Notes under the pieces: generated by a model
What the model was told of the DNA's origin: nothing
What the model saw: the letters and a program-made list of their open reading frames with translations, nothing else
The model's database searches: none
Shown: positions 12,999-46,688 of the stretch, piece after piece
Position numbering within the stretch: the stretch's first letter is position 1
Layout of the letters: every line of letters starts with the position of its first letter
Virus record (IMG/VR): IMGVR_UViG_3300020202_000001
Coordinates: 124,001 to 188,000 of that record
Length of the DNA: 64,000 nucleotides
Direction: 5' to 3' (one strand)
Position numbers and translations under genes: made by a program

Positions 12999-13250
12999 AT
13001 GCCAACCACGTCGCGAAGCGCGATCGAGTTCCTCCGCAGGCACGGGCTCCGACAGACGCCGCAGACCCCGCGGCCGATGTTCGACGCCGGTGCCCTGCTG
13101 ATCCACACGATCCCGCTCGACACGGACCAGCTCAACCCGGCCCTGCTGCTGGACGGGCTGGGCAGTCCGCCGCCGGACCGCGGCGTGACCGGGGCGTGGC
13201 CCCCGCCTCAGGAGGTAATCGAAGATGGGACGACAAGCGAGTCGCAGTAG
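12999..13250 (+). CDS. hypothetical protein
   Basis: GAGGGA RBS before ATG 12999. Confidence 0.55.
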   Translation: MPTTSRSAIEFLRRHGLRQTPQTPRPMFDAGALLIHTIPLDTDQLNPALLLDGLGSPPPDRGVTGAWPPPQEVIEDGTTSESQ

Positions 13251-35148: not shown

Positions 35149-35168
35149 CCTCAAAACCGGTTTTGAGA
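35149..35168. repeat. dispersed 20-bp site, copy 6 (contains perfect 18-bp palindrome CTCAAAACCGGTTTTGAG)
   Basis: Read directly. Confidence 0.95.
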
Positions 35169-35309
35169 ACGGCAGCGGACCGCACCGGCGGTGCCGATCG
35201 CGACGGCGGCCGAGCCAGAGGTTGCGGAGGGCCGGTACACATGCCGCCCCGCTCGCTATGGCCACGGTTTAGAGTACCCGTCAAGCCCCGCTGCCCTTGT
35301 GAAGGAGCC

Positions 35310-36434
35310 ATGCCCAAACCCATCCTGTCCATGTCGGCTGACTGGCACCTGCAGAACCGGGCGTGGACGCTCGCTGCGGGTCGTGACATCAGCGGCGACA
35401 GCTACTACTCCCTGAAGCAGATCGTCGACCACGCCATCGAGCACGAGGTGCAGGCGGTGGTCGGCGCTGGCGACCTGATCGACAAGACGATCAACAACTC
35501 CGACCCGATCGTGTTCCTCAACCAGCAGCTCGACCGGCTCCAGAAGAAGGAGATCCGGTGCCTGTACGTGCAGGGCCAGCACGAGATGCAGGACCGCCCC
35601 TGGCTCAGCGGCCACGCCTGGCCCGAGCACATGAGCGGCCTGCAGGTGACGATCGACACCGTCTGCATGTTCGGTCTCGACTTCCACCACAGCCCCCAGC
35701 TCCAGATCGCCCTGAACGCGATCCCGGAGGGCACGCACCTGCTCGTGGCCCACCAGGTGTGGGGCGAGTTCATGGGGTCGGTCGCGGCCCCGCAGGGCGG
35801 GATGTCGGACGTGCCGATGGTGGGCACCGTGTTCACCGGCGACTACCACGTCCGCAAGGAGATCGAGACGCGGGGCAAGGACGGCCAGAAGCTCCGCGTG
35901 ATCTCGCCCGGGTCGACGTGCATGCAGAGCATCGACGAGCCGTGGAAGAAGTTCTTCTACGTCGTCTACGACGACTACACCTGGAAGAAGGTGCGGCTCA
36001 AGACCCGCCACCGCGTCGACTGGCACGTCAGCGCGGCGGCCGACGTCGACAACCTGCTGCAGACGGTCGACACCGAGCTGACGCGGATCGCCGACGAGAC
36101 GGCCGGGTACGACGAGCGGGTCCGCAAGCCGATCTACTGGGTCGAGTACCCGCACAAGCTGGGCGAGCACCGGGGCCGGATCGTGAAAGCGATCGGCGAC
36201 CGGGCGTTCATCTTCTGGAAGGAAGTGCCGCCGGAGCCCCCGCCGGAGGTCGTGGCCCGCCGCAAGGAGGCCCAGGCCAAGGGCGAGCGGCGGGCGGCCA
36301 CGCTGCTGACCGAACTGCCCGGCTACCTGCAACAGGCGGAGCTGGGCCACCTGCAAGGCGACTGCACGCGGCTCCTGCAAGCCGGCAGCGTCGAGGACGA
36401 GCTTCGTCGCATGCGAGAGGAAGCGCTGAAATAG
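35310..36434 (+). CDS. sbcD: SbcD/Mre11-like metallophosphoesterase nuclease
   Basis: ADWHL, GAGDLID, QGQHE, VAHQ, TGDYH, SPGS motifs; AAGGAG RBS. Confidence 0.88.
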   Translation: MPKPILSMSADWHLQNRAWTLAAGRDISGDSYYSLKQIVDHAIEHEVQAVVGAGDLIDKTINNSDPIVFLNQQLDRLQKKEIRCLYVQGQHEMQDRPWLSGHAWPEHMSGLQVTIDTVCMFGLDFHHSPQLQIALNAIPEGTHLLVAHQVWGEFMGSVAAPQGGMSDVPMVGTVFTGDYHVRKEIETRGKDGQKLRVISPGSTCMQSIDEPWKKFFYVVYDDYTWKKVRLKTRHRVDWHVSAAADVDNLLQTVDTELTRIADETAGYDERVRKPIYWVEYPHKLGEHRGRIVKAIGDRAFIFWKEVPPEPPPEVVARRKEAQAKGERRAATLLTELPGYLQQAELGHLQGDCTRLLQAGSVEDELRRMREEALK

Positions 36435-36733
36435 TGGCTAGACCTGACCCCGAGGCGATCGAACAAGACCCGCGGTTCGCAAAAATCCTGGACGCCGGCC
36501 ACGGCATACCGAGCAGCGACTCGGAGCTGGGGAGCCGGGCGATCGCGGACATGATCGACTGGTGGCGGCGCTGTTACGCCGGCGGCGAGCAACTCGGAAA
36601 CATGCTCGACGACGTCGACCAGCTCGTTTGCATACTCAACAAGTTCAAAGCCGCCGTCGCCAAGGACCACTCCCTGGTGATCGACGACTCGCCGTTGCGG
36701 CGGCACGCCGCACTGGGACCGAACGACGGATGA
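36434..36733 (+). CDS. hypothetical protein
   Basis: TAGTG coupling. Confidence 0.55.
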   Translation: MARPDPEAIEQDPRFAKILDAGHGIPSSDSELGSRAIADMIDWWRRCYAGGEQLGNMLDDVDQLVCILNKFKAAVAKDHSLVIDDSPLRRHAALGPNDG

Positions 36734-37068
36734 AGCTACGCATCGAGATCGACCTTGACAACGACGCCTTCGCCGGCCGCAAGCTCGCCCGCGAGGTCGA
36801 GAAGATCCTCGACCTCCTCCCGTCCGACCTGGACGGGGTGGGGCGGCGGCAGCTGGCGACGTTCTCCAAGACGCTGATGGACAGCAACGGCAACTCGGTC
36901 GGAAAGGCCGTGGTCGTCGACGACGAGGTCACGCCCCGTTGTGCCAAGTGCACGACGAAGCTGACGGAGTCGACCCCGACGATGACGGTCTGCTCGAACG
37001 ACACCGCCCGCAGCCTGCGCGTCGAGATCGGCGACGTGGTCTGCAAGGCGTGCTACGACCGGGCCTGA
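36730..37068 (+). CDS. hypothetical protein (IDLDNDAF..DSNGNSVG family) with C-terminal CxxC pairs
   Basis: ATGA coupling; common small phage protein motif. Confidence 0.65.
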   Translation: MKLRIEIDLDNDAFAGRKLAREVEKILDLLPSDLDGVGRRQLATFSKTLMDSNGNSVGKAVVVDDEVTPRCAKCTTKLTESTPTMTVCSNDTARSLRVEIGDVVCKACYDRA

Positions 37069-37075
37069 GGTAACT

Positions 37076-39247
37076 ATGTGGATCAAGCGAGCGCTCTTCA
37101 GGAACATCGGCCGCCACCGCGAGCTGGACATCTACTTCCAGCGCGGGCTGGTGGGGATCTTCGGCCCGAACGGGTGGGGCAAGTCCACGATCGTCGACGG
37201 GATCTACGCCTGCCTGACGAACGACTGGAGCCGGTTCGCCGGCGTGAAACTCGACAACATCCGCGACACGGCCGACCCCGATGAGGAGTCGAGCATCACG
37301 GTCTGGGGCGAGCACGGGGACGTGCCGTTCGAGGTGTTCCGCCGCCTCCGCCGGGCCGAGAGCGAGAAGCGGAAGAAGGGCCTCCGCAAGGACAACGAGC
37401 TGATCGTCGACGGTAAGACGTTCGACAAGGACGAGGACATCAGGCGTGAGCTGACGGTACGCCTCGGCGTCAACCACAAGCTGATCGGCACGCACGTCTT
37501 CGTGGCCCAGCGGGAGATGTTCCGGTTCGTCTCCGACACCCCGGGCGACCGGGCGGCGACGTTCCAGATGCTCTGCGGGACCGAGAAGGCCAAGCAGATC
37601 GTCGACGCGATCGAGGCCCTGCTGGAGCAGGACAAGGAGCTGCTGGTCGTCGTCGACGACAACAGCGACGAGATCAACGCCCGCATCGGCGGCCGGGCGG
37701 TCGAGCTGCAGGCGGCCAAGGAGGAGCTGGCGGCCGCCACGGCGCTGCTGCTGCCCAAGAAGCGGCGGCTACTTTCAAAAACCGTTATTGAGAAGCGGCA
37801 GGCCTGGCGGCGGGCGGTCAAGGCGATCACGGCCCTGAAGCCGACGATCGTCGCGAGGAAGAAGGAGGTGTCGTCGGCGGAGCTGAAGTACACGGTGACG
37901 TCCACGGAGCTGAACGCCCTCGCCGCCGCCTTCAAGCGGGACAAGCCGCTGGCAGAGGAGGCTCGGGCCACGCTGAAGCGGATCACCGAGTACAACGAGC
38001 GACAGGAGGTGCAGGGCAACATCGAGCGGCGGCTGGCCGACGCCCGGACGAAGGTGAAGGAGCTGGGCGACCGCCCGCCCCTCCACGCGTCGGACGACAA
38101 CCGCGAGCGCCTCGTCGAGGAGCGGGGCACGCTGCGGGTGGAGTACCGGGAGAACAAGACGCTCCTGACCACGTTCGCGATCGAGGGCGTGGTGAAGTGC
38201 CCGACGTGCGGCACGAGCGTCCGGGACCTCGACGAGCACCTGCGGCTCGTGAAGGTCAAGCAGCCCAGGCTCAAGGCGCGGGGGCTGAAGCTCGCCAACT
38301 TGATCGAGGCGATCGACGCGGCCCGCGCGGCCCGGGAGGCGTACGACAAGGAGCGGCGGAAGGCGGACGCGAAGGTCTCGGAGTACGAGGCCCTGCTGAA
38401 GCACGCCAAGGTGAGCGATCCGCCGAAGGGCGACGCCAAGGCTCTGCAGCGGGTGGTCGACGACTTCGATGCGTTGGAGAAGAAGTACGACAAGGCCCGG
38501 CAGGTGAACGGCGATGCCGTCACCGCCGTGTCCACGGCCAAGGCCCGGCACGACGCCGTGGTCCAGCAGCGGGCGGACCTCCGGGTCGAGCGCGACGGCA
38601 ACGTCGTGACCGACGAGGAGCTGGAGCGTGCCAAGAAGCGGATGGCCCGCCACGAGGCGGCCAAGGTCAACGTCGCCGCCCTCAAGCAGAAGGTCGAGGG
38701 GATCGAGGCGGCCCAGGCCCAGGACGTCGAGGAGCTGGAGCGGCTCAAGGCGAAGCTGGCCAAGAACAAGAAGGCCCACCAGTTCGCGGCGAAGCTCAAG
38801 AAGATCGCCGAGGTCATGCACCGGCAGGCCCTGCCGCAGATGGTGGCCCAGTCGAACCTCCAGGACATGGAGGGCGACATCAACAAGATCCTCGACATGT
38901 TCGGCAGCCCGTTCTGGGTCGAGACGGCGGAGGACCTGACCTTCACCGTCCACTTCCCGGGCGAGCCGCCGCGCAACGCCCAGCGGCTCAGCGTCGGGCA
39001 GAAGGGCGTGCTCGCGATGGCGTTCCGCCCCGCGATCTCCGCCCTGTTCGACGCCGAGATCGGCATGATGACGCTGGACGAGCCGACCGCCGACATGGAC
39101 GAGCGGAACCGCGGGTTCATGGCCGCGGCGCTGGCCCAGTACGCGGCCCAGGTCCGGGGCCGCCGGCAGGTGATCGTCATCACCCACGCGAACGAGCTGC
39201 GGCAGTCGTTCGACCAGGTTGTGGAGCTAGGTGCACATGGCAACTGA
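37076..39247 (+). CDS. sbcC: SbcC/Rad50-like SMC ATPase
   Basis: Walker A GPNGWGKST, Q-loop FVAQ, zinc hook CPTC between coiled coils, signature LSVGQK, Walker B TLDEPT, H-loop VITH. Confidence 0.92.
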   Translation: MWIKRALFRNIGRHRELDIYFQRGLVGIFGPNGWGKSTIVDGIYACLTNDWSRFAGVKLDNIRDTADPDEESSITVWGEHGDVPFEVFRRLRRAESEKRKKGLRKDNELIVDGKTFDKDEDIRRELTVRLGVNHKLIGTHVFVAQREMFRFVSDTPGDRAATFQMLCGTEKAKQIVDAIEALLEQDKELLVVVDDNSDEINARIGGRAVELQAAKEELAAATALLLPKKRRLLSKTVIEKRQAWRRAVKAITALKPTIVARKKEVSSAELKYTVTSTELNALAAAFKRDKPLAEEARATLKRITEYNERQEVQGNIERRLADARTKVKELGDRPPLHASDDNRERLVEERGTLRVEYRENKTLLTTFAIEGVVKCPTCGTSVRDLDEHLRLVKVKQPRLKARGLKLANLIEAIDAARAAREAYDKERRKADAKVSEYEALLKHAKVSDPPKGDAKALQRVVDDFDALEKKYDKARQVNGDAVTAVSTAKARHDAVVQQRADLRVERDGNVVTDEELERAKKRMARHEAAKVNVAALKQKVEGIEAAQAQDVEELERLKAKLAKNKKAHQFAAKLKKIAEVMHRQALPQMVAQSNLQDMEGDINKILDMFGSPFWVETAEDLTFTVHFPGEPPRNAQRLSVGQKGVLAMAFRPAISALFDAEIGMMTLDEPTADMDERNRGFMAAALAQYAAQVRGRRQVIVITHANELRQSFDQVVELGAHGN
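37774..37793 (+). repeat. dispersed 20-bp site, copy 7, intragenic (TTCAAAAACCGTTATTGAGA)
   Basis: 18/20 match to copy 1 inside the sbcC coiled coil; run of rare A/T-ending codons. Confidence 0.8.
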
Positions 39248-40196
39248 GTGTCTCCGATTGCAAGTCTCGCCCGAGGGACAGGTGTGGTTCGGCGACGACC
39301 GCGAGGTCGCCGTCAACTCACGCCTGTCCCCCGAGGCGTTCGTCGCCGGCGAGCGGTTCCACGACGCGAAGCTGGTGCGGTTCCTCGGCCGGGCGGACAA
39401 CGCCGTCCTGGTCGAGGCCGTGCACCAGCACAAGGCCCGGCTGGACCCGACGCAGCGGCTGTCGCTGCCGAAGGTCCAGATCGGGAGCCCGCAGATGGCG
39501 CTGGGCAAGCGGCCCGGCGACGTGCTGCCGGGCCTGTGGCACGCCTGTGTCAGCTCCGACGTGTTCGCCAGCTGGTACGAGCTGGCGGACGCGGACTACG
39601 TCGTCTACTCGCTGGTCGCGGCCGTGCGGGCCAACGGCGGGCGGCCGGACGACAAGGCGCGGCGGATCATGTACTACCACCCGGCGTGGCCGGCGATGAG
39701 CTTCACGCCCGCCTACGACATCGACGCGTGCTGCGTGACGCTCGCGACGATCGTGGACGTGCGGTGGTTCACGCACCCGGCCAAGCCACACCGCCCGAGC
39801 AAGCTGTGGACGTACCTCGGGCTGACGCCGGAGAACGCCCGGGCGGTCTGCGGGGGCAAGCAGTACGGCGGCCACCACTACGACCGGGCGCGGACGGCGA
39901 TGCGGGCGTGGCTCGGCTTCGACCCGCTCGTCTCGCACATGCTCGAAGGGAGCCTGGCCGAGAGCGGCCCGGCGTTCCTGCGACGCATCTGCGCGACGAC
40001 GGAGGAGCGGAGCAAGGGCCTCCTGCTGGCGACGCGGAAGTACGTCCAGTTCTTCCGCGACGTGTGGGCGGCGGAGCGGTCGCAGGGCCGCCAGGCGTTC
40101 GAGCCCGAGATGTTTTTCAACACGACCGACGAGGTCACGGCGTACCGCTTACACCGGCAAACGCTGCACACGCCCGCCGAGGGCGGGCCGATTTGA
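39237..40196 (+). CDS. degenerate IS110-transposase/Nop-domain-like protein
   Basis: HPAWPAMSFTP..ACCVTLATIVDVRWF..PSKLWTYLGLTP matches the IS110 C-terminal motif (L.sipG....aa.llaeigdi.rF....kl.syaGL.P); N-terminus follows RuvC-like spacing (KVQIGSP) without the DEDD acids; overlaps sbcC stop. Confidence 0.6.
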   Translation: MATECLRLQVSPEGQVWFGDDREVAVNSRLSPEAFVAGERFHDAKLVRFLGRADNAVLVEAVHQHKARLDPTQRLSLPKVQIGSPQMALGKRPGDVLPGLWHACVSSDVFASWYELADADYVVYSLVAAVRANGGRPDDKARRIMYYHPAWPAMSFTPAYDIDACCVTLATIVDVRWFTHPAKPHRPSKLWTYLGLTPENARAVCGGKQYGGHHYDRARTAMRAWLGFDPLVSHMLEGSLAESGPAFLRRICATTEERSKGLLLATRKYVQFFRDVWAAERSQGRQAFEPEMFFNTTDEVTAYRLHRQTLHTPAEGGPI

Positions 40197-40221
40197 CGCC
40201 CCTCTAACACGGCTGTAACAT
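40193..40221 (+). promoter_or_regulatory. sigma70-like promoter of the RAMP-like gene
   Basis: TTGACG-17 nt-TAACAT. Confidence 0.65.
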
Positions 40222-40284
40222 GCTGTCGCGAATGGCATCGCGCACGGAACGCGCGGTTCGGCGGCACAGCCAAGGACGGCTGGA

Positions 40285-40815
40285 GTGCGAGAACTAACTG
40301 TCAGGATCAGGTTCACGAAGCACTGCCTCGGCAGGGTGCTTGACCGGTCGGCGGCGGACGGGCGAATGGTCTTCGCCCGCACCCCGGACGCCCACGTCAT
40401 GTTCCCCGCGAGCTGGCATGCCTCGAACATGGTCCTCGCGGCGAAGTTGCTCGGGCGGCATCAGGGCTCGGTACGCAAGATCCTCTGGGACCCCGAAGTG
40501 GACTGCGTGACCCGGCCCGACCGGTGGTTCAAGCGGTACTACACCGGCAGGGACAACAAGCGACGCTTCGCGGTACACGAGGCGTTCTTCCCCGGCCAGG
40601 TGGTGGGCCTGAACTGTGCGGTCCCGTCCGAGGTGTCCGACGACGACCTCGTGCAGCTGATGAACATCGCCGGCCGGTACAAGGGCCTGAGCCCGTGGGA
40701 CCCCGGCGAGTACGGACAGTTCCAGGTGGAGTCGATCGCGTTGCGACGAGGGCCGGCAATCCCTCCCGCCGCGACACAGAAGGAGAGCGAACAACAGTCA
40801 AACGTCAGCGCATAA
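40285..40815 (+). CDS. stand-alone RAMP (Cas7/Csm3-like RRM) protein
   Basis: Beta1 LTVRIRFTKHCLG, F.R....VMFPAS..LAA, HEAFFPGQVVGLNC, and terminal Gly-rich loop LMNIAGRYKGLSPWDPGEYGQFQV. Confidence 0.65.
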   Translation: MRELTVRIRFTKHCLGRVLDRSAADGRMVFARTPDAHVMFPASWHASNMVLAAKLLGRHQGSVRKILWDPEVDCVTRPDRWFKRYYTGRDNKRRFAVHEAFFPGQVVGLNCAVPSEVSDDDLVQLMNIAGRYKGLSPWDPGEYGQFQVESIALRRGPAIPPAATQKESEQQSNVSA

Positions 40816-40819
40816 AGAA

Positions 40820-40853
40820 GGCCTTCGACCGGCATCGAAGGCCCTCTCGTTCT
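40820..40853 (+). terminator. hairpin after the RAMP gene
   Basis: GGCCTTCGA-CCGGCA-TCGAAGGCC followed by CTCTCGTTCT. Confidence 0.55.
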
Positions 40854-40923
40854 AGGAGGTAGCTACCCCTGCGGGCGTCCACCGAAGGTTTCCAACGCCC
40901 ACATCATAGCGCCCTCCTGAACG
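40848..40923 (+). ncRNA. candidate structured RNA (long stem with internal loops)
   Basis: Nested pairings CGTTC/GAACG, AGGAGG/CCTCCT, GCTA/TAGC, GGGCGT/ACGCCC, ACC-GAA-GGT. Confidence 0.35.
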
Positions 40924-41003
40924 CAATGCAATACGAGTCAAGCCCCCGCGTGCGCGAAAAACGCCGTGCCGGGTCTCCGCGTCCAGGTTGAGGGCACTAC
41001 GCA

Positions 41004-42548
41004 ATGGCAGAAAAACCGCAGATAACGCTGCTCAAGAGCGGCAACCGGCTGGTCGTCGCCCCTACCCCGACGCAGGTCAGGGAGGTGCTCGAAACGAAGC
41101 TGAGCTTCACCGCGAAGCACATGCTCTACGGTGCCGAGCGGTTCGAGGAAGGCAACAAGGGCAAGCGGTTAGAGCTGATCGACTACCAGTGCTACTTCCT
41201 CGATCACAAGAACCGCATCGCGACCAGCCTCGGCTTTTACCACCGCATCACCAAGGCCCTGAAGGCCCGCGGCTACCCGGTCAGGATTAAGGACCTGACG
41301 CCCCCGGCAAAGCCTGAGATCTTCGTCCCCCGCTGGAACCGCGTTCTCGGCCCCGACTCCGGCATCAAGCTGCGGCACGGGCAGAAGGAGTTCCTGGAGT
41401 GGTTCGTCGCCCAGGTGCAGGCCGGGCTCCCCGGCCGCGCCGACGCCCCGCCCGGCTACGGCAAGAGCTTCCTGATCGGCCTCGCGGCCATGCTCTTCCC
41501 GAAGGCCAAGATCCACTACACGTCCAAGCGGGCCAGCGTCATGCGGGACCGCATCTTCCCCGAGCTGTGCGGGATGCTCCCCGACGTCGGCCTGGTCGGC
41601 GGCGGGGTGCGGAAGGCCGGCTGTCGCGTGCAGGGGTACACGTTCGACTCGCTCCACCACAGCGACGGCAAGTGCGACATCCTCTTCACCGACGAGTGCC
41701 ACGAGGCGGCGGCGGACGACGCGGCCGAGCAGCTGGCGAAGTACGACGAGAGCCTGAACTACGGGTTCAGCGCCACGCAGGACATGCGGATCGACAACAA
41801 GGACCTCCGCGTCGAGGCCATGTTCGGGCCGGTCGGCTACAAGATGACGTACCAGACCGCCGTGAAGCACGGGCTCGTCGTGCCGCTCGAAGTGCGGTGG
41901 CGGAACGTGCGGATGGACATGGACCCGTGCGAGGGGATCGAGGACTCGGTCGAGCGTAAGCGGTGGGGCATCTGGCGGAACCGCCACCGCAACCAGCTGA
42001 TCGCCAAGGACGCGCGGAGCCACCCGGACCAGCAGGTGCTCGTCACCTGCGAGACGATCGAGCACGCGCTGGCCCTGAAGCGCGAGATGCCCGAGTTCAC
42101 GCTCGTGTACGCCGCGCGGGACATCTCGTTCGAGAAGCGACGCTACTTCCGCAAGCTGGGCCTGTGGCCGAAGAAGGGCCTCAAGCAGATGACGGAGGAG
42201 CGCAAGCAGAAGCTCACCCGCCTGTTCGAGCGGGGCAAGCTGCGGAAGGTGATCGTCACGACCGTCTGGAACGTCGGCGTGTCGATGAACCACCTCGAAG
42301 TCCTGGTGCGGGCCGACGCCGGCGGCAGCCCGATCATGGACACGCAGATCCCCGGCCGCGTCAGCCGCACGAACAAGGCGATCGGCAAGAAGCAGGGCGT
42401 CATCTACGACTACAAGGACCAGTTCAACTCCGGCTTCAAACGGAAGAGCGGCAGCCGCCGCTCCAGCTACGTCGGCAACGGCTGGACCCAGGTCGACCCA
42501 GGCACGAAACCCGGCGAGAAACTGCAGCACCGGCTGTGGGAGGATTGA
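41004..42548 (+). CDS. superfamily 2 DExH helicase (UvsW/XPB-like)
   Basis: APPGYGKS, FTDECH, FSAT, TTVWNVGVS, QIPGRVSR, IYDYKD. Confidence 0.9.
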   Translation: MAEKPQITLLKSGNRLVVAPTPTQVREVLETKLSFTAKHMLYGAERFEEGNKGKRLELIDYQCYFLDHKNRIATSLGFYHRITKALKARGYPVRIKDLTPPAKPEIFVPRWNRVLGPDSGIKLRHGQKEFLEWFVAQVQAGLPGRADAPPGYGKSFLIGLAAMLFPKAKIHYTSKRASVMRDRIFPELCGMLPDVGLVGGGVRKAGCRVQGYTFDSLHHSDGKCDILFTDECHEAAADDAAEQLAKYDESLNYGFSATQDMRIDNKDLRVEAMFGPVGYKMTYQTAVKHGLVVPLEVRWRNVRMDMDPCEGIEDSVERKRWGIWRNRHRNQLIAKDARSHPDQQVLVTCETIEHALALKREMPEFTLVYAARDISFEKRRYFRKLGLWPKKGLKQMTEERKQKLTRLFERGKLRKVIVTTVWNVGVSMNHLEVLVRADAGGSPIMDTQIPGRVSRTNKAIGKKQGVIYDYKDQFNSGFKRKSGSRRSSYVGNGWTQVDPGTKPGEKLQHRLWED

Positions 42549-42551
42549 CCC

Positions 42552-43370
42552 GTGGAGGCAACCTTGAAACGACGCAGGCGGGCCGGCGGCGCTGACCGCG
42601 GCCTGGAACAACTGGCGACGCTGCTGCTGCGCACCTGGCAGGTGGAGCTGCAGCGTTACCTGAGCATGGGCCGCGAGCCCGACGACGTCGCCGACCCCGA
42701 CGACGTCGTCCGCCACCTGACCGACACGTCGGGGGCGAGGCGGCAGCGGCGGATCGACAACCTGACGGAGAACATCGAGCTGGCCCCGGCCCGCGCCCGG
42801 GTCGACCGGTCGACGAGCCTGTGGATGGACGTCGCCCGGATCGTGGTGCGGAACCGGTTCGACCCGGAGCGGTTCGTGCGGCGGCAGTTCGCCGTGCTGT
42901 CGCCCCGGATGCCGACCGAGAAGCGCAGCCGGCTCCCGCAGCCGGAAATGCTCAAGAGCGAGCGGGCGATCAAGAACTACAAGGCCGGGCACGGCGTCTC
43001 GATCACTGAGATCCAGGCCGCCTTCAAGTCGCAGCTCTCCCGGTTCAAGGTGCAGGTCGCGGTCCTCGGGCAGTCGCGGTTCTACAACCTCGACAGCGAG
43101 GGGACGTGGATCGCGGTGCTGACCAACGAGGAGGAGCCGCTGTCGGCGCTGTTCCGGTACTGCACCGCCCGCCGCATCCTCAAGCAGGCGGGGCTCAAGC
43201 AGCGGGCGAAGTTCAAGGAGATCGCGGCCACCTACCGGACGGCGGCGGCGATCCAGTACGTCTTCGAGGCGGACGAGTACGACGAGATCTGGAAGGACCA
43301 CCTGCCCGAGGGCTGGTCCGAGAAGGCCCAACGTATCTACCGCAGCTTTTACGGCTTCAACGACGAGTGA
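42552..43370 (+). CDS. hypothetical protein in replication block
   Basis: GGAGG RBS; typical codons. Confidence 0.7.
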   Translation: MEATLKRRRRAGGADRGLEQLATLLLRTWQVELQRYLSMGREPDDVADPDDVVRHLTDTSGARRQRRIDNLTENIELAPARARVDRSTSLWMDVARIVVRNRFDPERFVRRQFAVLSPRMPTEKRSRLPQPEMLKSERAIKNYKAGHGVSITEIQAAFKSQLSRFKVQVAVLGQSRFYNLDSEGTWIAVLTNEEEPLSALFRYCTARRILKQAGLKQRAKFKEIAATYRTAAAIQYVFEADEYDEIWKDHLPEGWSEKAQRIYRSFYGFNDE

Positions 43371-43384
43371 AGGAGCACGCGACC

Positions 43385-45061
43385 ATGCCCAAGCAGAGCG
43401 ACAAGAAGAAGCGGAAAGAGGGTCAGTTCGAGGACATGAAGCGGCGGCCGGCGCTCGACCAGCGGAAGAAGGAGCTGATGATGGCCGTCCTCCTCCGCAA
43501 CGAGGACGCCTTCAAGGCCACCCGGGAGATCCTCAAGCCCGAGCACTTCGGGGAGTTCGACCGCGGGTACAAGGTCGCGTGGGCGTTGGCCAACGAGTTC
43601 TACGACGAGCACGAGGCCCTGCCCGGCTTCGAGTTCCTGATGGCGGAGATCGAGGGGGCCAGCGAGGCCAACCCGAACCTGTTCAACGACGCCGAGTACG
43701 ACAAGCTCTCGTCGTTCATCGAGTACGCGTTCGACAAGGACAGCTTCGAGGCGGACATCACCCAGGACCGCGCCAGCGCGGACTGGGGCATCAAGACGGC
43801 GAAGAAGTTTCTCGACGAGCGGCTCGCCGCCAAGATGAAGGAGGTCATCCAGTCCAAGGACATGCTCCCGGCGAACCTGCCGGAGTTCATGAACCAGATG
43901 GCCGCCGAGGCGGAGCAGATCGCGTCCGTCTCTACCGAGGTCGACTTCGACCCGTTCCCCGACGACTGGCACAAGACCGCCAGCATCAAGGTCTTCTCCA
44001 CCGGCATCCCGTTCTTCGACGAGTTCCTCGGCGGCGGCCACGCGCCGGGCGAGGTGTACGGGCTGATGGGGCCGTACGGGTCGTGCAAGACGACGATCGC
44101 GTCGATGCTGATCGTCGAGGCGGCCAAGGCGTTCTACCAGGAGCACCTGCTCGACCCGAGCCAGCCGCCCAAGCTGGCCGTGATCGCCTGCTACGAGGCC
44201 CGCAAGCCGGAAATGCGGAACCGGACGCTCGGGTACGCCGCGATGATCCGCCGGGCGACGATGGAGGCGATGGCCCCGGACAAGCCGCTGGAGCTGGCCG
44301 GGTTCTCGACCTCCGACAAGCTGAAGAAGTACGAGAAGCGGATCTGGCGGGCGAAGATCAACAACGGCGAGAAGGTGGCCGGGGAGCTGGAACGCGTCAT
44401 GGACGCGCTGACCTACCTCCGCCGGCACATGGTCGTGCTGGACATGACCGGCCACGAGACGAAGGGCGTGGGCAACGGCGGGATCAAGGAGGTCTCGCAG
44501 ATGATCTCCAACGTCTGCCGCCAGCGGAAGGCCAAGTGCGGCCTGTTCGTGATGGACTACGTCGGCGCGATGGTGAAGCGGTACATGGGCGGCAACGACG
44601 TCGAGACGAGCGAGCTGCGGCACCTGATCGGCGGGGCTCCCCTGACGATCAAGAGCCAGATCGGCGACGTGTTCGACTGCCCCTCGTACGCCCTCCACCA
44701 GCTCGCCGGCGAGGCCAACAGCTTCGGGTCGGCCGTCCTGGCCGACCACACGAACGCGGCGGAGTCGAAGAGCTTCGCGGAGAACCTCGACTTCAGCTTC
44801 TCGATCAGCAAGCCGCAGGACCCCGACGCGGTCGCGCTGTTCGGCTGCACGAAGCACCGCCGCCAGCCGGGGCGGATGAACACGATCATCAAGATCGACG
44901 GCGGGCTCAATCGCGTGTTGTCGGCCGACGACAAGTACATGATTAACACCCACGCCCGGAAGATCATGCTGATCGCCGACGTCAACAAGCTGCCCGAGAA
45001 CTCGGCGATCAAGAAGAACAGCGCCGCGGCCGGCGGCGGGTCGGCGTCCAGCCTGGACTAG
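43385..45061 (+). CDS. dnaB: DnaB-like (SF4) replicative helicase
   Basis: ILKPEHF N-terminal motif, STGIPFFDEFLGGG..PGEVYGLMGPYGSCKT, FVMDY, LHQL, AESKSF, TKHR; AAGGAG RBS. Confidence 0.85.
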   Translation: MPKQSDKKKRKEGQFEDMKRRPALDQRKKELMMAVLLRNEDAFKATREILKPEHFGEFDRGYKVAWALANEFYDEHEALPGFEFLMAEIEGASEANPNLFNDAEYDKLSSFIEYAFDKDSFEADITQDRASADWGIKTAKKFLDERLAAKMKEVIQSKDMLPANLPEFMNQMAAEAEQIASVSTEVDFDPFPDDWHKTASIKVFSTGIPFFDEFLGGGHAPGEVYGLMGPYGSCKTTIASMLIVEAAKAFYQEHLLDPSQPPKLAVIACYEARKPEMRNRTLGYAAMIRRATMEAMAPDKPLELAGFSTSDKLKKYEKRIWRAKINNGEKVAGELERVMDALTYLRRHMVVLDMTGHETKGVGNGGIKEVSQMISNVCRQRKAKCGLFVMDYVGAMVKRYMGGNDVETSELRHLIGGAPLTIKSQIGDVFDCPSYALHQLAGEANSFGSAVLADHTNAAESKSFAENLDFSFSISKPQDPDAVALFGCTKHRRQPGRMNTIIKIDGGLNRVLSADDKYMINTHARKIMLIADVNKLPENSAIKKNSAAAGGGSASSLD

Positions 45062-45066
45062 GAACT

Positions 45067-46134
45067 ATGTCGGAACCCCTGAACCCAGCGCTCTACCGCA
45101 ACCTGAAGAGGGTCTTCGGCAAGGTGGTGATCTCGAACGAGGGCGTCGCCTTCGTCGGTCGCTACGTGCCGAAGATCGTCGAGGAGGGCGAGGAACTCTA
45201 CATCGAGAACTCGGGCGAGTATTACCGGGTGAACTGCAACAAGTGCAGCGACACCCGGCACCGCCTGTACATCAACCACCGGTGGGCGAAGCGGGACGAG
45301 AAGGGCCGGCGGAACCTGTGGATGGCCGTCTGCTACAACGACCCCACCTGCTACTCCGACCAGGAATCCCGCGAGGAGCTGTACAACCGGCTGAGCGAGA
45401 TCCGGGGCGTGCTGGAGGAGGCGAAGATCAAGCAGGGCGTCGTCCGCAAGGAGGCGTCGATCGTCGACCCGCCCGGCCCGATCATCACGCTCGACAAGCT
45501 GCCGCCGAACCACCCCGCCAACGTCTACCTCGCCGACCGGTACTTCGACCCCGAGCTGCTCGGGCGGACGTACGGCGTCGGGCTGGTGACGAACTCGATG
45601 TACTACCTCGCCCGCGACCGCATCTACTTCCCGATCGTCCAGGACGGGAAGCTGCGGGGCTGGCAGTGCCGGTACGCCGGGGAGCTGGACTGGAAGGACA
45701 AGTCCAACCCGCCGAAGAGCTTCAACTGCCCGGACATGATGCGGGGCCACCTGCTGTACGGCCTCGACCAGGCGAAGCGCTACCAGACCGGGGTCCTCGT
45801 CGAGGGGCCGACGTCGCGGCTCAACTTCGGGCCGATGGCGATGGCCTCGCTCGGGTTCCCGATCACGAACAACCAGTCCCGCTTGGTCGTGCCGCACTTC
45901 AAGGACCACTCGATGGTCATGCTGTTCGACCCCGACGTGCTGGAGAGCCCGTCGATGAAGCGGAAGTACGACCAGGTGTACGACGAGCTGAAGGACCAGT
46001 TTCGACACGGGCTCGCGGCGGTCGCGCTGCCCAAGCCTTACGACCCGGCCGACCTCGATCGGTACTGGGTCCGGGAGTACGTCCGCCGCGAGGCCAAGGC
46101 CCAAGGGGTCAAGGTGCGGTGGGAGAAACGGTGA
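45067..46134 (+). CDS. dnaG: DnaG-like DNA primase
   Basis: CNKC..H..C zinc finger, YLADR, RIYFPI..G.LRGWQCR, LYGLD, TOPRIM LVEGP, FDPD, DPAD. Confidence 0.85.
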   Translation: MSEPLNPALYRNLKRVFGKVVISNEGVAFVGRYVPKIVEEGEELYIENSGEYYRVNCNKCSDTRHRLYINHRWAKRDEKGRRNLWMAVCYNDPTCYSDQESREELYNRLSEIRGVLEEAKIKQGVVRKEASIVDPPGPIITLDKLPPNHPANVYLADRYFDPELLGRTYGVGLVTNSMYYLARDRIYFPIVQDGKLRGWQCRYAGELDWKDKSNPPKSFNCPDMMRGHLLYGLDQAKRYQTGVLVEGPTSRLNFGPMAMASLGFPITNNQSRLVVPHFKDHSMVMLFDPDVLESPSMKRKYDQVYDELKDQFRHGLAAVALPKPYDPADLDRYWVREYVRREAKAQGVKVRWEKR

Positions 46135-46141
46135 GGTCGGC

Positions 46142-46510
46142 ATGGAAGCTGAGCACGTCAAGGCAGCCGCGTTTCGCGACCCGGAGACGGGCCACGTAAC
46201 CGAGGGCGACTACCACGTCGACGCAGAACTCAACAGCCCCAGAGCCGACCGGCTGCGGTCGGAGGGGTACGAGGACGGCGGGGCCGTCATCGAGAAGATG
46301 ATGTTCCAGCTCGGGGAGGCGTTCCACGACGCGGAGGGGTTCGTGACCAGCACGGGCCGCTTCGTGAGCCGGCACGAGGCGCTGACGGTGGCCAAGGCCG
46401 CCGAGCAGCGCATCGGCGGCAGGGTGGACCGAAAGACCTGGCTGAACTCGGAAGATCTCGAACATGACGACCGTTACATGCCACCCGCTGAGCAACTATG
46501 CAGCGCGTGA
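46142..46510 (+). CDS. conserved phage hypothetical protein
   Basis: GFVTSTGRFVSRHEAL.VA...L.SEDL motif. Confidence 0.7.
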   Translation: MEAEHVKAAAFRDPETGHVTEGDYHVDAELNSPRADRLRSEGYEDGGAVIEKMMFQLGEAFHDAEGFVTSTGRFVSRHEALTVAKAAEQRIGGRVDRKTWLNSEDLEHDDRYMPPAEQLCSA

Positions 46511-46673
46511 GGCCCGGCGACAGTGGATGCGGCACTTCCGCCGGGTCTACCTCGACCGGACGGGCCTGCACTACATCGGCCCGATCACCGAGCTGCAGAT
46601 GTTCCTCAACTGCAACTACCTGCCGGAGACGGCGGTCTACCAGCTGACCGGGGTCGGCGGGGCCTGGATCTAA
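46464..46673 (+). CDS. small hypothetical protein
   Basis: Typical codons in 3' part; TAA lies within repeat copy 8. Confidence 0.5.
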   Translation: MTTVTCHPLSNYAAREARRQWMRHFRRVYLDRTGLHYIGPITELQMFLNCNYLPETAVYQLTGVGGAWI

Positions 46674-46688
46674 AAACCGGTTTTGAGA
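46669..46688 (+). repeat. dispersed 20-bp site, copy 8 (TCTAAAAACCGGTTTTGAGA)
   Basis: 12 nt upstream of the polymerase ATG. Confidence 0.95.

Follow-up and report, generated by a model that had tools for sequence, protein, structure and literature searches.

The RAMP gene and its genomic neighborhood

The window analyzed here, a stretch of 64,000 nucleotides (positions 124,001 to 188,000 of the IMG/VR record IMGVR_UViG_3300020202_000001), belongs to a jumbo phage with a complete 224-kb genome that is known from soil metagenomes only. Positions 35153..46684 of the window hold a replication-repair cassette on the plus strand that encodes Mre11/SbcD-like and Rad50/SbcC-like proteins (the latter at 37076-39247), a protein of about 319 aa referred to as gp3 (39231..40196), a Vipr-like, single-RRM RAMP (40285..40815), an SF2 DNA helicase (41004..42548; phrog_16; Helicase_C, ResIII), the 272-aa protein gp7 (42552-43370), and a DnaB-like protein (about 43391-45061). 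A palindromic motif of the phage, AAAACCGGTTTT, flanks this seven-gene cassette on both sides, at 35153 and 46673. Neither an SSB of the PF00436 family (another SSB is possible) nor a true RecA was found in the genome.

The RAMP gene, which is present in a single copy in the genome, starts with GTG, ends with TAA, and encodes 176 aa; an AAGGA Shine-Dalgarno-like site, read from the sequence, lies 8 nt 5' of the GTG (40272..40276, plus strand). The N-terminus of the product, MRELTVRIRF, is conserved across 49 homologs, so the GTG start is correct, and the database gene call P0001 (149 aa, starting from M28) is a truncated version of the same protein. Homologs number 99 in a 90%-identity database and form 271 clusters at 50% identity, and this ORF is a real gene, far beyond chance.

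The ORF and the accompanying features described by the sequence-only reading, namely, the RAMP motifs, a sigma-70-like TTGACG-17-TAACAT site (40193..40221, plus strand), and a 9-bp hairpin, are all present, and the motifs fall on invariant or nearly invariant columns. The claim that the gene has its own promoter and terminator, as an orphan and self-contained expression unit, was not supported. The promoter-like site is the sole one of its kind within 39000-42000 (9/12 matches, with 0.2 expected from shuffles), and the TGA that ends gp3 falls partly within the first of its two hexamers; the site is not conserved in the relatives, which have nearly no spacer there. The G+C-rich hairpin just 3' of the RAMP stop codon (40816..40847, with the 9-bp core at 40820-40843) has no T-run 3' of it, so it does not count as an intrinsic terminator, and the terminator scan made no call. 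A second hairpin, imperfect and 76 nt long (40848..40923, plus strand), lies within the 188-nt spacer between the RAMP and helicase genes, which folds with a z of -2.8 and is absent from the nearest relative; the fold of the 88-nt spacer upstream of the RAMP gene is unremarkable (z of -0.4).

Instead of standing alone, the RAMP gene is fixed in the Mre11-Rad50-gp3-RAMP-helicase-DnaB cassette. The order Rad50 > (gp3) > RAMP > SF2 helicase > DnaB is kept in 60/60 loci, and the remotest members of the family show it too. Upstream of the RAMP gene, most relatives have a gap of 1 to 11 nt or an overlap, and stop and start codons within the cassette often overlap; gp3 and RAMP are predicted to be translationally coupled as a rule. 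In the closest relative represented by a contig, the upstream gene and the RAMP gene share 13 nt, and the helicase gene follows 31 nt past the RAMP stop codon. Since the gene is fixed in this cassette and its relatives nearly lack spacers, we regard the hairpin and the promoter-like hexamers as local to this genome, with putative function only.

Fold and conserved residues

The AlphaFold (AF2) model of the RAMP (pLDDT of 92.9) is a single RRM with the order b1-a1-b2-thumb-b3-a2-Gly loop-b4, which contains the complete RRM/ferredoxin-like core b1-a1-b2-b3-a2-b4. In this model, b1 (residues 2-10) is followed by helix-1 (42-56), b2 (67-73), a thumb hairpin (81-87/93-101), b3 (106-113), helix-2 (119-132), the Gly loop (130-146), b4 (146-153), and a variable tail (156-176). 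The thumb, predicted to have an indel-rich tip at residues 88-92, carries R84, H98, and E99; H98 and E99 never vary among 49 sequences, and all three are nearly invariant in 97. The Gly loop has three invariant glycines, G130, G134, and G144, and a fourth, G141, that is common. The motif IRFTKHCLG corresponds to residues 8-16, HE...G to residues 98-104, and GRYKGLSPWDPGEYGQFQV to residues 130-148, with G16, H98, E99, G104, G130, G134, S136, P137, and G144 as the invariant or nearly invariant columns. Residues 11-41 form no helix, only coil and short strands (pLDDT of about 97), and no acidic residue in that segment is invariant or nearly so in either the 49 or the 97 sequences.

Searches of Pfam, NCBIfam, and PADLOC returned nothing useful for the RAMP, and a lysozyme retrieved by a single-sequence PDB search was dismissed as a chance match. 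The best 50 PDB matches of the model are all Csm3/Cas7 proteins (E values of about 1e-6; top Z score of 11.7, with 154/156 residues aligned). The whole domain has the same fold as the Csm3/Cmr4/Cas7 backbone subunits of type III, III-E, and VII CRISPR effectors (8do6_E, 6ifl_F, and 8yhd_O), with Z scores of 10 to 11.7, 145 to 156 residues aligned, and rmsd values of 3.2 to 3.8 A, although it is smaller and shares only 7 to 13% identity with them. As modeled, the gene product is thus a minimal one-domain RAMP; the sequence-only reading would have been refuted by a predicted structure lacking an RRM core with a terminal Gly loop, and as the model shows both, the call of a minimal RAMP stands.

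The conserved thumb residues raise the possibility, in our view quite improbable, that the RAMP is an endoribonuclease, either Cas6-like or Csm3-like in activity, that uses H98 and E99 with R84 to cut a phage or host transcript, for example in processing or regulating the mRNA of the replication operon. Some RAMPs, such as Cas6, are RNases that rely on His and need no metal, and the position of the gene within a long polycistronic cassette would fit this. However, the best structural matches are the backbone Cas7/Csm3 proteins and Vipr, not Cas6, no conserved hairpin substrate is found beside the RAMP gene in the relatives, and the b1-helix-1 loop, which carries the catalytic Asp in Csm3 and Cmr4, has no conserved acidic residue in this family.

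Relationship to the Vipr proteins

The phage RAMPs guided by GGY-NN arrays, which the sequence-only reading had mentioned as background, turned out to be the nearest kin of this protein. They belong to the VIPR systems, first described in 2026 and proposed as ancestors of the CRISPR RAMPs, and the five Vipr seeds given in the VIPR methods (X1U2U4, A0A1F4YLN4, A0A2D6XG06, A0A0F9A1L0, and A0A661D0E2) are the AFDB clusters that match the RAMP at ranks 1, 2, 3, 4, and 6, respectively (bioRxiv 10.64898/2026.04.26.720920,.720927). Comparison of the RAMP family with Vipr families by hhalign gave probabilities of 92.7% (E value of 4e-7 over 95 columns) and 93.6% (E value of 2e-7), and the sole PHROG match, a weak one, is the Vipr family phrog_4652. 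The relationship is distant: single-sequence and HMM searches found no connection between the RAMP family and Vipr, BLASTP of the RAMP against the Vipr of SUSP1 gave no significant match, and the Vipr profiles used in genome searches did not detect the RAMP at E values of ≤0.01. By the modeled fold and the sequence profile, viral Vipr proteins are the closest kin of the RAMP, which nevertheless represents a well-conserved family separate from canonical VIPR.

Like the RAMP, the Vipr proteins (from Escherichia phage SUSP1, PDB 36pp; gp41 of Gordonia phage Trine; and phrog_4652) are phage-encoded single-RRM RAMPs, 150 to 200 aa long, with a thumb and a Gly loop. Profile homology (93%) spans helix-1 to b4 and includes a common Gly-loop pattern, AG..xG..W.P..G.F.V, in which the invariant G170, G174, G183, and F185 of Vipr correspond to G130, G134, G144, and F146 of the RAMP, and the aromatic W178 corresponds to W138, a position that is aromatic in most members. 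The residues that read the GGY triplet in the SUSP1 protein (H17, R138, D177, W178, and R179; PDB 36pp) are otherwise poorly represented: D177 is replaced by the invariant P137, R179 falls on a variable column, and the column of H13, examined as the counterpart of H17, is not conserved, whereas R138 may have its counterpart in R84 or R94. Vipr also contains, between b1 and helix-1, an alpha-helical bundle (K33, R39) that keeps the non-target strand and the skipped base of the target in place; the RAMP lacks such a bundle and is 20 to 25 residues shorter before helix-1. The loci differ as well. A VIPR locus consists of two genes (vipr and vap) with long flanking intergenic regions and has a vrRNA array in cis, whereas the RAMP gene lies within the seven-gene cassette, with no long flanking intergenic regions and no array of any 5-nt motif in cis; unlike vipr, it occupies a fixed slot in a replication operon and evolves slowly and vertically.

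Search for a guide RNA array

The vrRNA of VIPR was sought as tandem 5-nt units (GGY/NN, NNNGG, YNNNG, NNNNG, or another fixed trinucleotide/NN), 9 to 16 of them, near the vipr gene. Runs of YNNGG, NNNGG, YNNNG, and NNNNG were no longer than those in shuffled sequences, both in 60 loci with 4 kb on either side and in the complete 224-kb genome. A motif-agnostic period-5 scan recovered the arrays of the positive controls SUSP1 and Trine, at 40% and 68% G+C, and returned zero arrays in the phage's own genome, in a second complete genome (G001), and in 126 related loci; the array scanners score 11 to 15 units in SUSP1, Trine, and the relative G009, which carries a canonical Vipr together with its array. 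In the genomes of five relatives (90 to 100% complete), seven-unit GGYNN runs gave 7 matches versus 11 for the reversed control. No Rfam family was found over the whole genome, and therefore no hammerhead-spaced arrays; neither did the genome contain any TIGR-like period, nor was any candidate intergenic RNA conserved with G001. Among the candidates considered and rejected, the best GGYNN-like stretch (107800-107844 of the genome, 6/8 units) and a run of 12 NNNNG units (window positions 13088-13147, minus strand) were within the shuffle range, and TRF and information-content scans for periods of 4-12, 17-20, and 34-40 yielded only codon-periodic coding repeats of acidic and collagen-like type.

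No cas genes lie beside the RAMP gene, its neighbors being those for Rad50, gp3, and the helicase, and the genome has no CRISPR array, the only CRISPR-like repeat triples being inside coding collagen-like and acidic repeats. The observation that the window holds neither a CRISPR nor a GGY-NN array therefore extends to the complete genome and to the relatives, and the suggested genome-wide scan for mini-arrays and 5-nt periodic tracts came back empty with positive controls. Since the complete genome and the relatives both lack repeat-RNA arrays, the family looks like a guide-array-free use of the RAMP fold.

These results bear on the idea, which we consider somewhat unlikely, that the RAMP is a functional effector of VIPR type with an unrecognized guide: a single or non-periodic RNA, one encoded at a distance, or one that comes from the host or from a co-resident element. 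Its filament would then bind DNA under the direction of that RNA and silence a competitor or regulate phage or host genes. All characterized relatives (Vipr and Cas7/Csm3) bind guide RNA, the Gly-loop scaffold and W138 match those of Vipr, some known VIPR types have a single vrRNA and some use units other than GGY, and this genome has the structured 188-nt spacer 3' of the RAMP gene. However, scans that recovered the positive controls found no fixed-column 5-nt array of any motif in 126 loci and two complete genomes, the RAMP gene of most relatives is flanked by coding sequence alone, no intergenic sequence is shared with G001, and the helical bundle, D177, and R179 have not been kept. The slow vertical evolution of the gene is also unlike that of genes involved in conflict.

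Distribution and evolution

The RAMP family is confined to an uncultivated phage lineage with genomes of roughly 200 to 235 kb. A tblastn search with the RAMP against 50,697 phage records found no relative, and the helicase had only remote matches there, to A511 and Lb338-1, so the lineage has no cultured relative. These phages span 36% to 69% G+C, and their hosts must therefore be very different. Pairwise identity is nearly the same for the RAMP (0.59) and the helicase (0.58), and the distances of the RAMP correlate with those of Rad50, gp3, and the helicase at 0.91 to 0.93, as compared with 0.94 for Rad50 versus the helicase; none of 500 permutations in a Mantel test (0/500) reached the observed value. 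As judged by these sequence comparisons, the RAMP is inherited vertically with the cassette, at the same slow rate of evolution as the helicase.

This pattern makes very improbable a role of the RAMP as an anti-CRISPR decoy, a Cas7 look-alike that joins or caps the filaments of host class 1 systems or soaks up crRNA. Such a role would fit the full-length match of its fold to Csm3 and type VII Cas7 and the location of this phage gene among replication, presumably early, genes. Anti-CRISPRs, however, are patchy and fast evolving, the opposite of what is seen here: the RAMP matches the helicase in conservation, is strictly co-inherited, and occupies the same slot in phages of 36% to 69% G+C. In addition, its closest kin is Vipr and not a host Cas7.

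A strictly core status of the gene can be rejected, as the 100% complete relative G006 has no RAMP. Together with the absence of a downstream RAMP gene from 8/60 gp3-seeded loci, this makes the RAMP dispensable, unlike a core replication factor, which counts against reading it as a replication factor. The same 8 loci, along with L145, where the RAMP occurs without gp3, mean that gp3 and the RAMP are not an obligate pair.

Possible role in phage DNA metabolism

The reading that we tentatively favor is that the RAMP is an array-free nucleic-acid binder in phage DNA metabolism and not a programmable weapon. The protein keeps the nucleic-acid-binding scaffold of helix-1, thumb, and Gly loop, and single-stranded nucleic acid would be bound along the surface that these elements form, with the thumb residues R84, H98, and E99 as the best candidates for ligand contacts. 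As in its relatives, the RAMP is probably a head-to-tail oligomer, although one that would lack a repeat-coded guide of its own; polymerization on a guide RNA, specifically, is something that we infer from those relatives. Such an oligomer may coat or hold an RNA, R-loop, or ssDNA intermediate for the neighboring nuclease and helicases. Phage synteny can last without a functional link, and no RAMP is known to have a role in replication or to work without a guide RNA.

A broader version of this reading, which must be considered unlikely as a whole, would make the entire family a guide-array-free replication/recombination factor that polymerizes on RNA, an R-loop, or ssDNA beside Mre11-Rad50 and two helicases, possibly with gp3. 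The family could then be a pre-guide survivor, ancestral to Vipr and then to the CRISPR RAMPs, or a Vipr exapted into phage DNA metabolism. Each VIPR member so far has been defined by a repeat-coded guide RNA, and the RAMP family would be a large, old, and slowly evolving sister group that has kept the scaffold, has neither the array nor the GGY readers, and resides in a replication/recombination operon. If true, it would show either the role of the fold before it became programmable or its recruitment into DNA metabolism, and either outcome bears directly on how RNA-guided immunity arose.

The upstream neighbor gp3

The gp3 protein has no match in Pfam, its strand 1 does not end in a conserved acidic residue, and neither a TIGR array nor a conserved spacer resembling a bridge RNA is found near its gene. 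In structure comparisons, the sole PDB representative with a Z score of at least 8 is TIGR-TasR (9mty_B; Z score of 9.8 over 227 residues), followed by TasH (Z score of 7.5) and the IS110 protein of ISCro4 (Z score of 6.7); an IS110 cluster of the ESM Atlas aligns with a TM score of 0.66 over 262 residues. The likeness to IS110 and TIGR-TasR consists in a RuvC-like N-terminal domain combined with a helical domain and belongs to gp3, not to the RAMP. With its IS110/TasR-like architecture, gp3 represents a second array-less case in the same operon.

A minimal RAMP protein related to Vipr

The gene under study occupies positions 40285 to 40815 on the plus strand and encodes a 176-aa protein, with a GTG start codon, an AAGGA site read from the sequence 8 nt upstream of it, and a TAA stop codon. 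This ORF, proposed in the sequence-only reading, is real: a search of 5.8 billion proteins identified 99 homologs, none with a Pfam domain or an informative name and many from contigs of 180 to 235 kb, and the N-terminal MRELTVRIRF is nearly invariant among 49 aligned homologs, which confirms the GTG at 40285 as the start. The public database gene call (P0001) is therefore truncated; its 149 aa begin at the internal Met28 and lose the conserved first strand (positions 40285 to 40365). The invariant columns of the 49-sequence alignment are E3, G16, A52, H98, E99, P114, L125, G130, G134, S136, P137, and G144. The family profile matched 271 of 1.84 billion cluster representatives, all of them clusters of small proteins, and searches of Pfam, NCBIfam, and PADLOC returned no match to the protein.

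An AlphaFold2 model with the homolog alignment supplied (pLDDT 92.9) contains, in order, strand b1 (residues 2 to 10), helix-1 (42 to 56), b2 (67 to 73), a hairpin (81 to 87 and 93 to 101), b3 (106 to 113), helix-2 (119 to 132), a Gly-rich loop, and b4 (146 to 153). The best 50 Foldseek matches of this model in the PDB are all Csm3/Cas7 subunits of type III, III-E, and VII effectors (E about 1e-6), and VIA-align aligned 154 of 156 residues with Csm3/Cas7 at Z 11.7. The element order agrees with the RAMP layout that had been read from the sequence, and both the RAMP core and the Gly loop are present, so the RAMP assignment stands.

Phage Vipr proteins polymerize on vrRNAs of 9 to 16 GGY/NN units and silence DNA targets, as reported in 2026 (VIPR papers, bioRxiv 10.64898/2026.04.26.720920 and.720927), and several comparisons connect the protein with them. 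Its AlphaFold DB clusters at ranks 1, 2, 3, 4, and 6 (X1U2U4, A0A1F4YLN4, A0A2D6XG06, A0A0F9A1L0, and A0A661D0E2) are exactly the five founding hits named in the VIPR discovery paper. A PDB profile search gave one weak match, "SUSP1 Vipr protein" (36pp_D), across helix-2, the Gly loop, and b4; the sole PHROG match, also weak, is phrog_4652 over the C-terminal 38 residues. Members of phrog_4652 include SUSP1 vipr (L070:2039-2626; E 1e-96) and its relative gp41 of Gordonia phage Trine (L071:1542-2117; E 5e-62). When the family profile (97 sequences) was compared with two Vipr profiles, it matched the first at 92.7% probability (E 4e-7; 95 columns, helix-1 to b4) and the second at 93.6% (E 2e-7). 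Given these profile matches and the identity of the fold clusters with the Vipr seeds, the relationship is real yet distant: an HMM search of the protein's own genome with the Vipr profile did not detect it at E <= 0.01. The protein is thus a Vipr-related minimal RAMP.

According to the VIPR cryo-EM paper, GGY is read in Vipr by H17, R138, D177, W178, and R179, and an alpha-helical bundle (K33, R39) handles the target and nontarget strands. The protein retains the Gly-loop scaffold (G130, G134, G144, and F146 versus Vipr G170, G174, G183, and F185) and has an aromatic residue, W138, at the position of W178. In contrast, D177 corresponds to the invariant proline P137, and R179, invariant in Vipr, aligns with a variable column. 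The model has no helix within residues 11 to 41 despite a pLDDT of about 97 there, from which the Vipr-type bundle is read as absent. Two GGY readers are thus replaced and the bundle is missing. In the thumb, R84, H98, and E99 are nearly invariant and peculiar to this family, a further difference from Vipr; that the protein is an RNase using H98 and E99 for cleavage seems improbable.

Absence of a guide array

The virus record (224,418 bp) is a complete genome that has direct terminal repeats of about 127 nt, and its positions 124001 to 188000 form the window. A 5-nt array scanner recovered all four vrRNAs of SUSP1 and, right after Trine gp41, an array of 13 GGC/NN units; the G+C content of Trine (68%) is close enough to that of the present genome (69%) to make it a fair control. 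The longest YNNGG, NNNGG, YNNNG, and NNNNG runs were at shuffle level both in the complete genome and in 60 related IMG/VR loci extended by 4 kb in both directions. Since a later preprint describes Vipr-like proteins with GAC/NN, CAC/NN, WGT/NN, or TGH/NN units, a motif-agnostic period-5 scan was made, in which a hit needed 3 or more of the 5 columns to be fixed across 8 or more of 9 units. The scan was positive in SUSP1 and Trine and found nothing in the genome under study, in G001 (another complete genome, of 235 kb), or in 126 family loci. Seven GGYNN repeats in a row matched 7 times in five relatives' genomes (90 to 100% complete), against 11 for the reversed control, and searches at other periods returned just codon-periodic coding repeats.

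No CRISPR array was found in the genome, and Rfam detected neither tRNAs nor any other family in it. The intergenic DNA shared with G001 comprises only a regulatory palindrome (see below) and one probable small gene. The protein therefore has no guide array in cis, and the earlier observation that the window holds neither a CRISPR nor an obvious GGY-NN array extends to the whole genome and the related loci. A canonical system is nevertheless present in the lineage and would have been noticed: one fragmentary relative (G009, IMGVR_UViG_3300028908_000005), which has no RAMP in this slot, encodes a canonical Vipr (a 211-aa ORF with a GLGDFRP Gly loop at L161:1495-2127, minus strand; E 7e-22 against the Vipr profile), with 11 YNNGG units beside it on the same strand (L161:805-862). 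A cryptic or trans-encoded guide for the protein under study is an unlikely, if conceivable, explanation. In the VIPR papers, the vrRNA is what defines a system, and an array-less clade embedded among replication genes does not appear in their main text.

In Trine itself, the annotated CDS gp40 (L071:2120-2400; NC_047991.1) opens with two GGC/NN vrRNA-like arrays, each flanked by a conserved element with GGTTCGACTCC, which resembles a tRNA T-arm. This annotated gene probably begins with noncoding RNA.

Genomic neighborhood and possible function

In all 60 loci, the gene order is Mre11/SbcD-like, Rad50/SbcC-like, gp3 (about 320 aa), RAMP, SF2 helicase, a protein of about 270 aa, and DnaB-like helicase; even the most distant RAMP members (25 to 30% identity) occupy the identical slot, and in L145, which has no gp3, the RAMP gene has Rad50 and the helicase as its immediate neighbors. 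In most loci, 1 to 11 nt separate gp3 from the RAMP gene; among relatives with a contig, the closest one (67% identity) has the two genes overlapping by 13 nt and the helicase beginning 31 nt past the RAMP stop codon. Among 42 nonredundant loci, mean pairwise identity is 0.59 for the RAMP, 0.58 for the helicase, 0.46 for gp3, and 0.44 for Rad50, and RAMP distances follow those of its neighbors (Spearman 0.91 to 0.93, compared with 0.94 for Rad50 versus the helicase; reached in 0 of 500 permutations). The operon position is thus fixed, and evolution has been slow and vertical. The RAMP is not indispensable, as it lies just downstream of gp3 in 52 of 60 loci found via gp3 but is absent there from the other 8, and a 100% complete relative (G006) lacks it altogether.

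The upstream gene gp3 (39231 to 40196, plus strand; about 319 aa) has no Pfam or PHROG match. Its model (pLDDT 91) combines a RuvC/RNase H-like N-terminal domain with a helical domain, an architecture predicted to resemble those of IS110 proteins and TIGR-TasR. The only match with Z >= 8 among 48,161 PDB representatives is TIGR-TasR (Z 9.8, 227 residues), followed by TasH (Z 7.5), an IS110-family bridge recombinase (Z 6.7), and Nop5 (Z 5.2); Foldseek and ESM Atlas also place gp3 with IS110 proteins (ESM Atlas cluster TM 0.66). Strand 1 does not end in a conserved acidic residue, and neither a TIGR array nor a spacer resembling a bridge RNA was found nearby. Judging from the model, gp3 is thus, next to the Vipr-like protein, the second product of this operon that resembles an RNA-guided effector but has no array.

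Tentatively, the RAMP protein may use the usual RAMP surface to bind single-stranded nucleic acid, with no repeat code involved, and would serve the phage replication/recombination module. Neither a PF00436 SSB nor a true RecA was found in the genome, which lends weak support to such a role. A function as an anti-CRISPR decoy of this Csm3/Cas7-like protein appears highly improbable.

The sequence-only reading gave the gene its own promoter and terminator. The sigma-70-like TTGACG-17-TAACAT (40193 to 40221, plus strand) exists and is the only such site in 3 kb (0.2 expected), and the hairpin at 40820 to 40843 is real but lacks a T-run. The spacer before the helicase folds with z = -2.8 and carries a 76-nt imperfect hairpin (40848 to 40923, plus strand); the nearest relative, with just 31 nt between the two genes, has nothing equivalent. 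Because relatives lack a spacer at the positions of the promoter-like site and the 40820 to 40843 hairpin, these two are not family features.

The genome derives from soil metagenomes, only soil-metagenome DNA runs contain its sequence, and the phage collection holds no cultured relative. Long acidic D/E-coding repeats lie at about 52.2 to 53.2 kb of the window and collagen-like repeats at 88.5 to 90.7 kb of the genome. A palindrome with the core AAAACCGGTTTT (consensus roughly GATCyAAAAACCGGTTTTGAGAtC), AT-rich in this G+C-rich genome, occurs in 35 copies, mostly 0 to 40 nt before gene starts; none of these adjoins the RAMP gene. Of the copies in the window (6152, 13869, 20697, 24888, 31414, 35153, 46673, 55901, and 61632), those at 35153 and 46673 frame the whole Mre11-to-DnaB cassette. 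The motif, present in G001 too, probably serves this phage as a promoter, operator, or cassette punctuation of its own.
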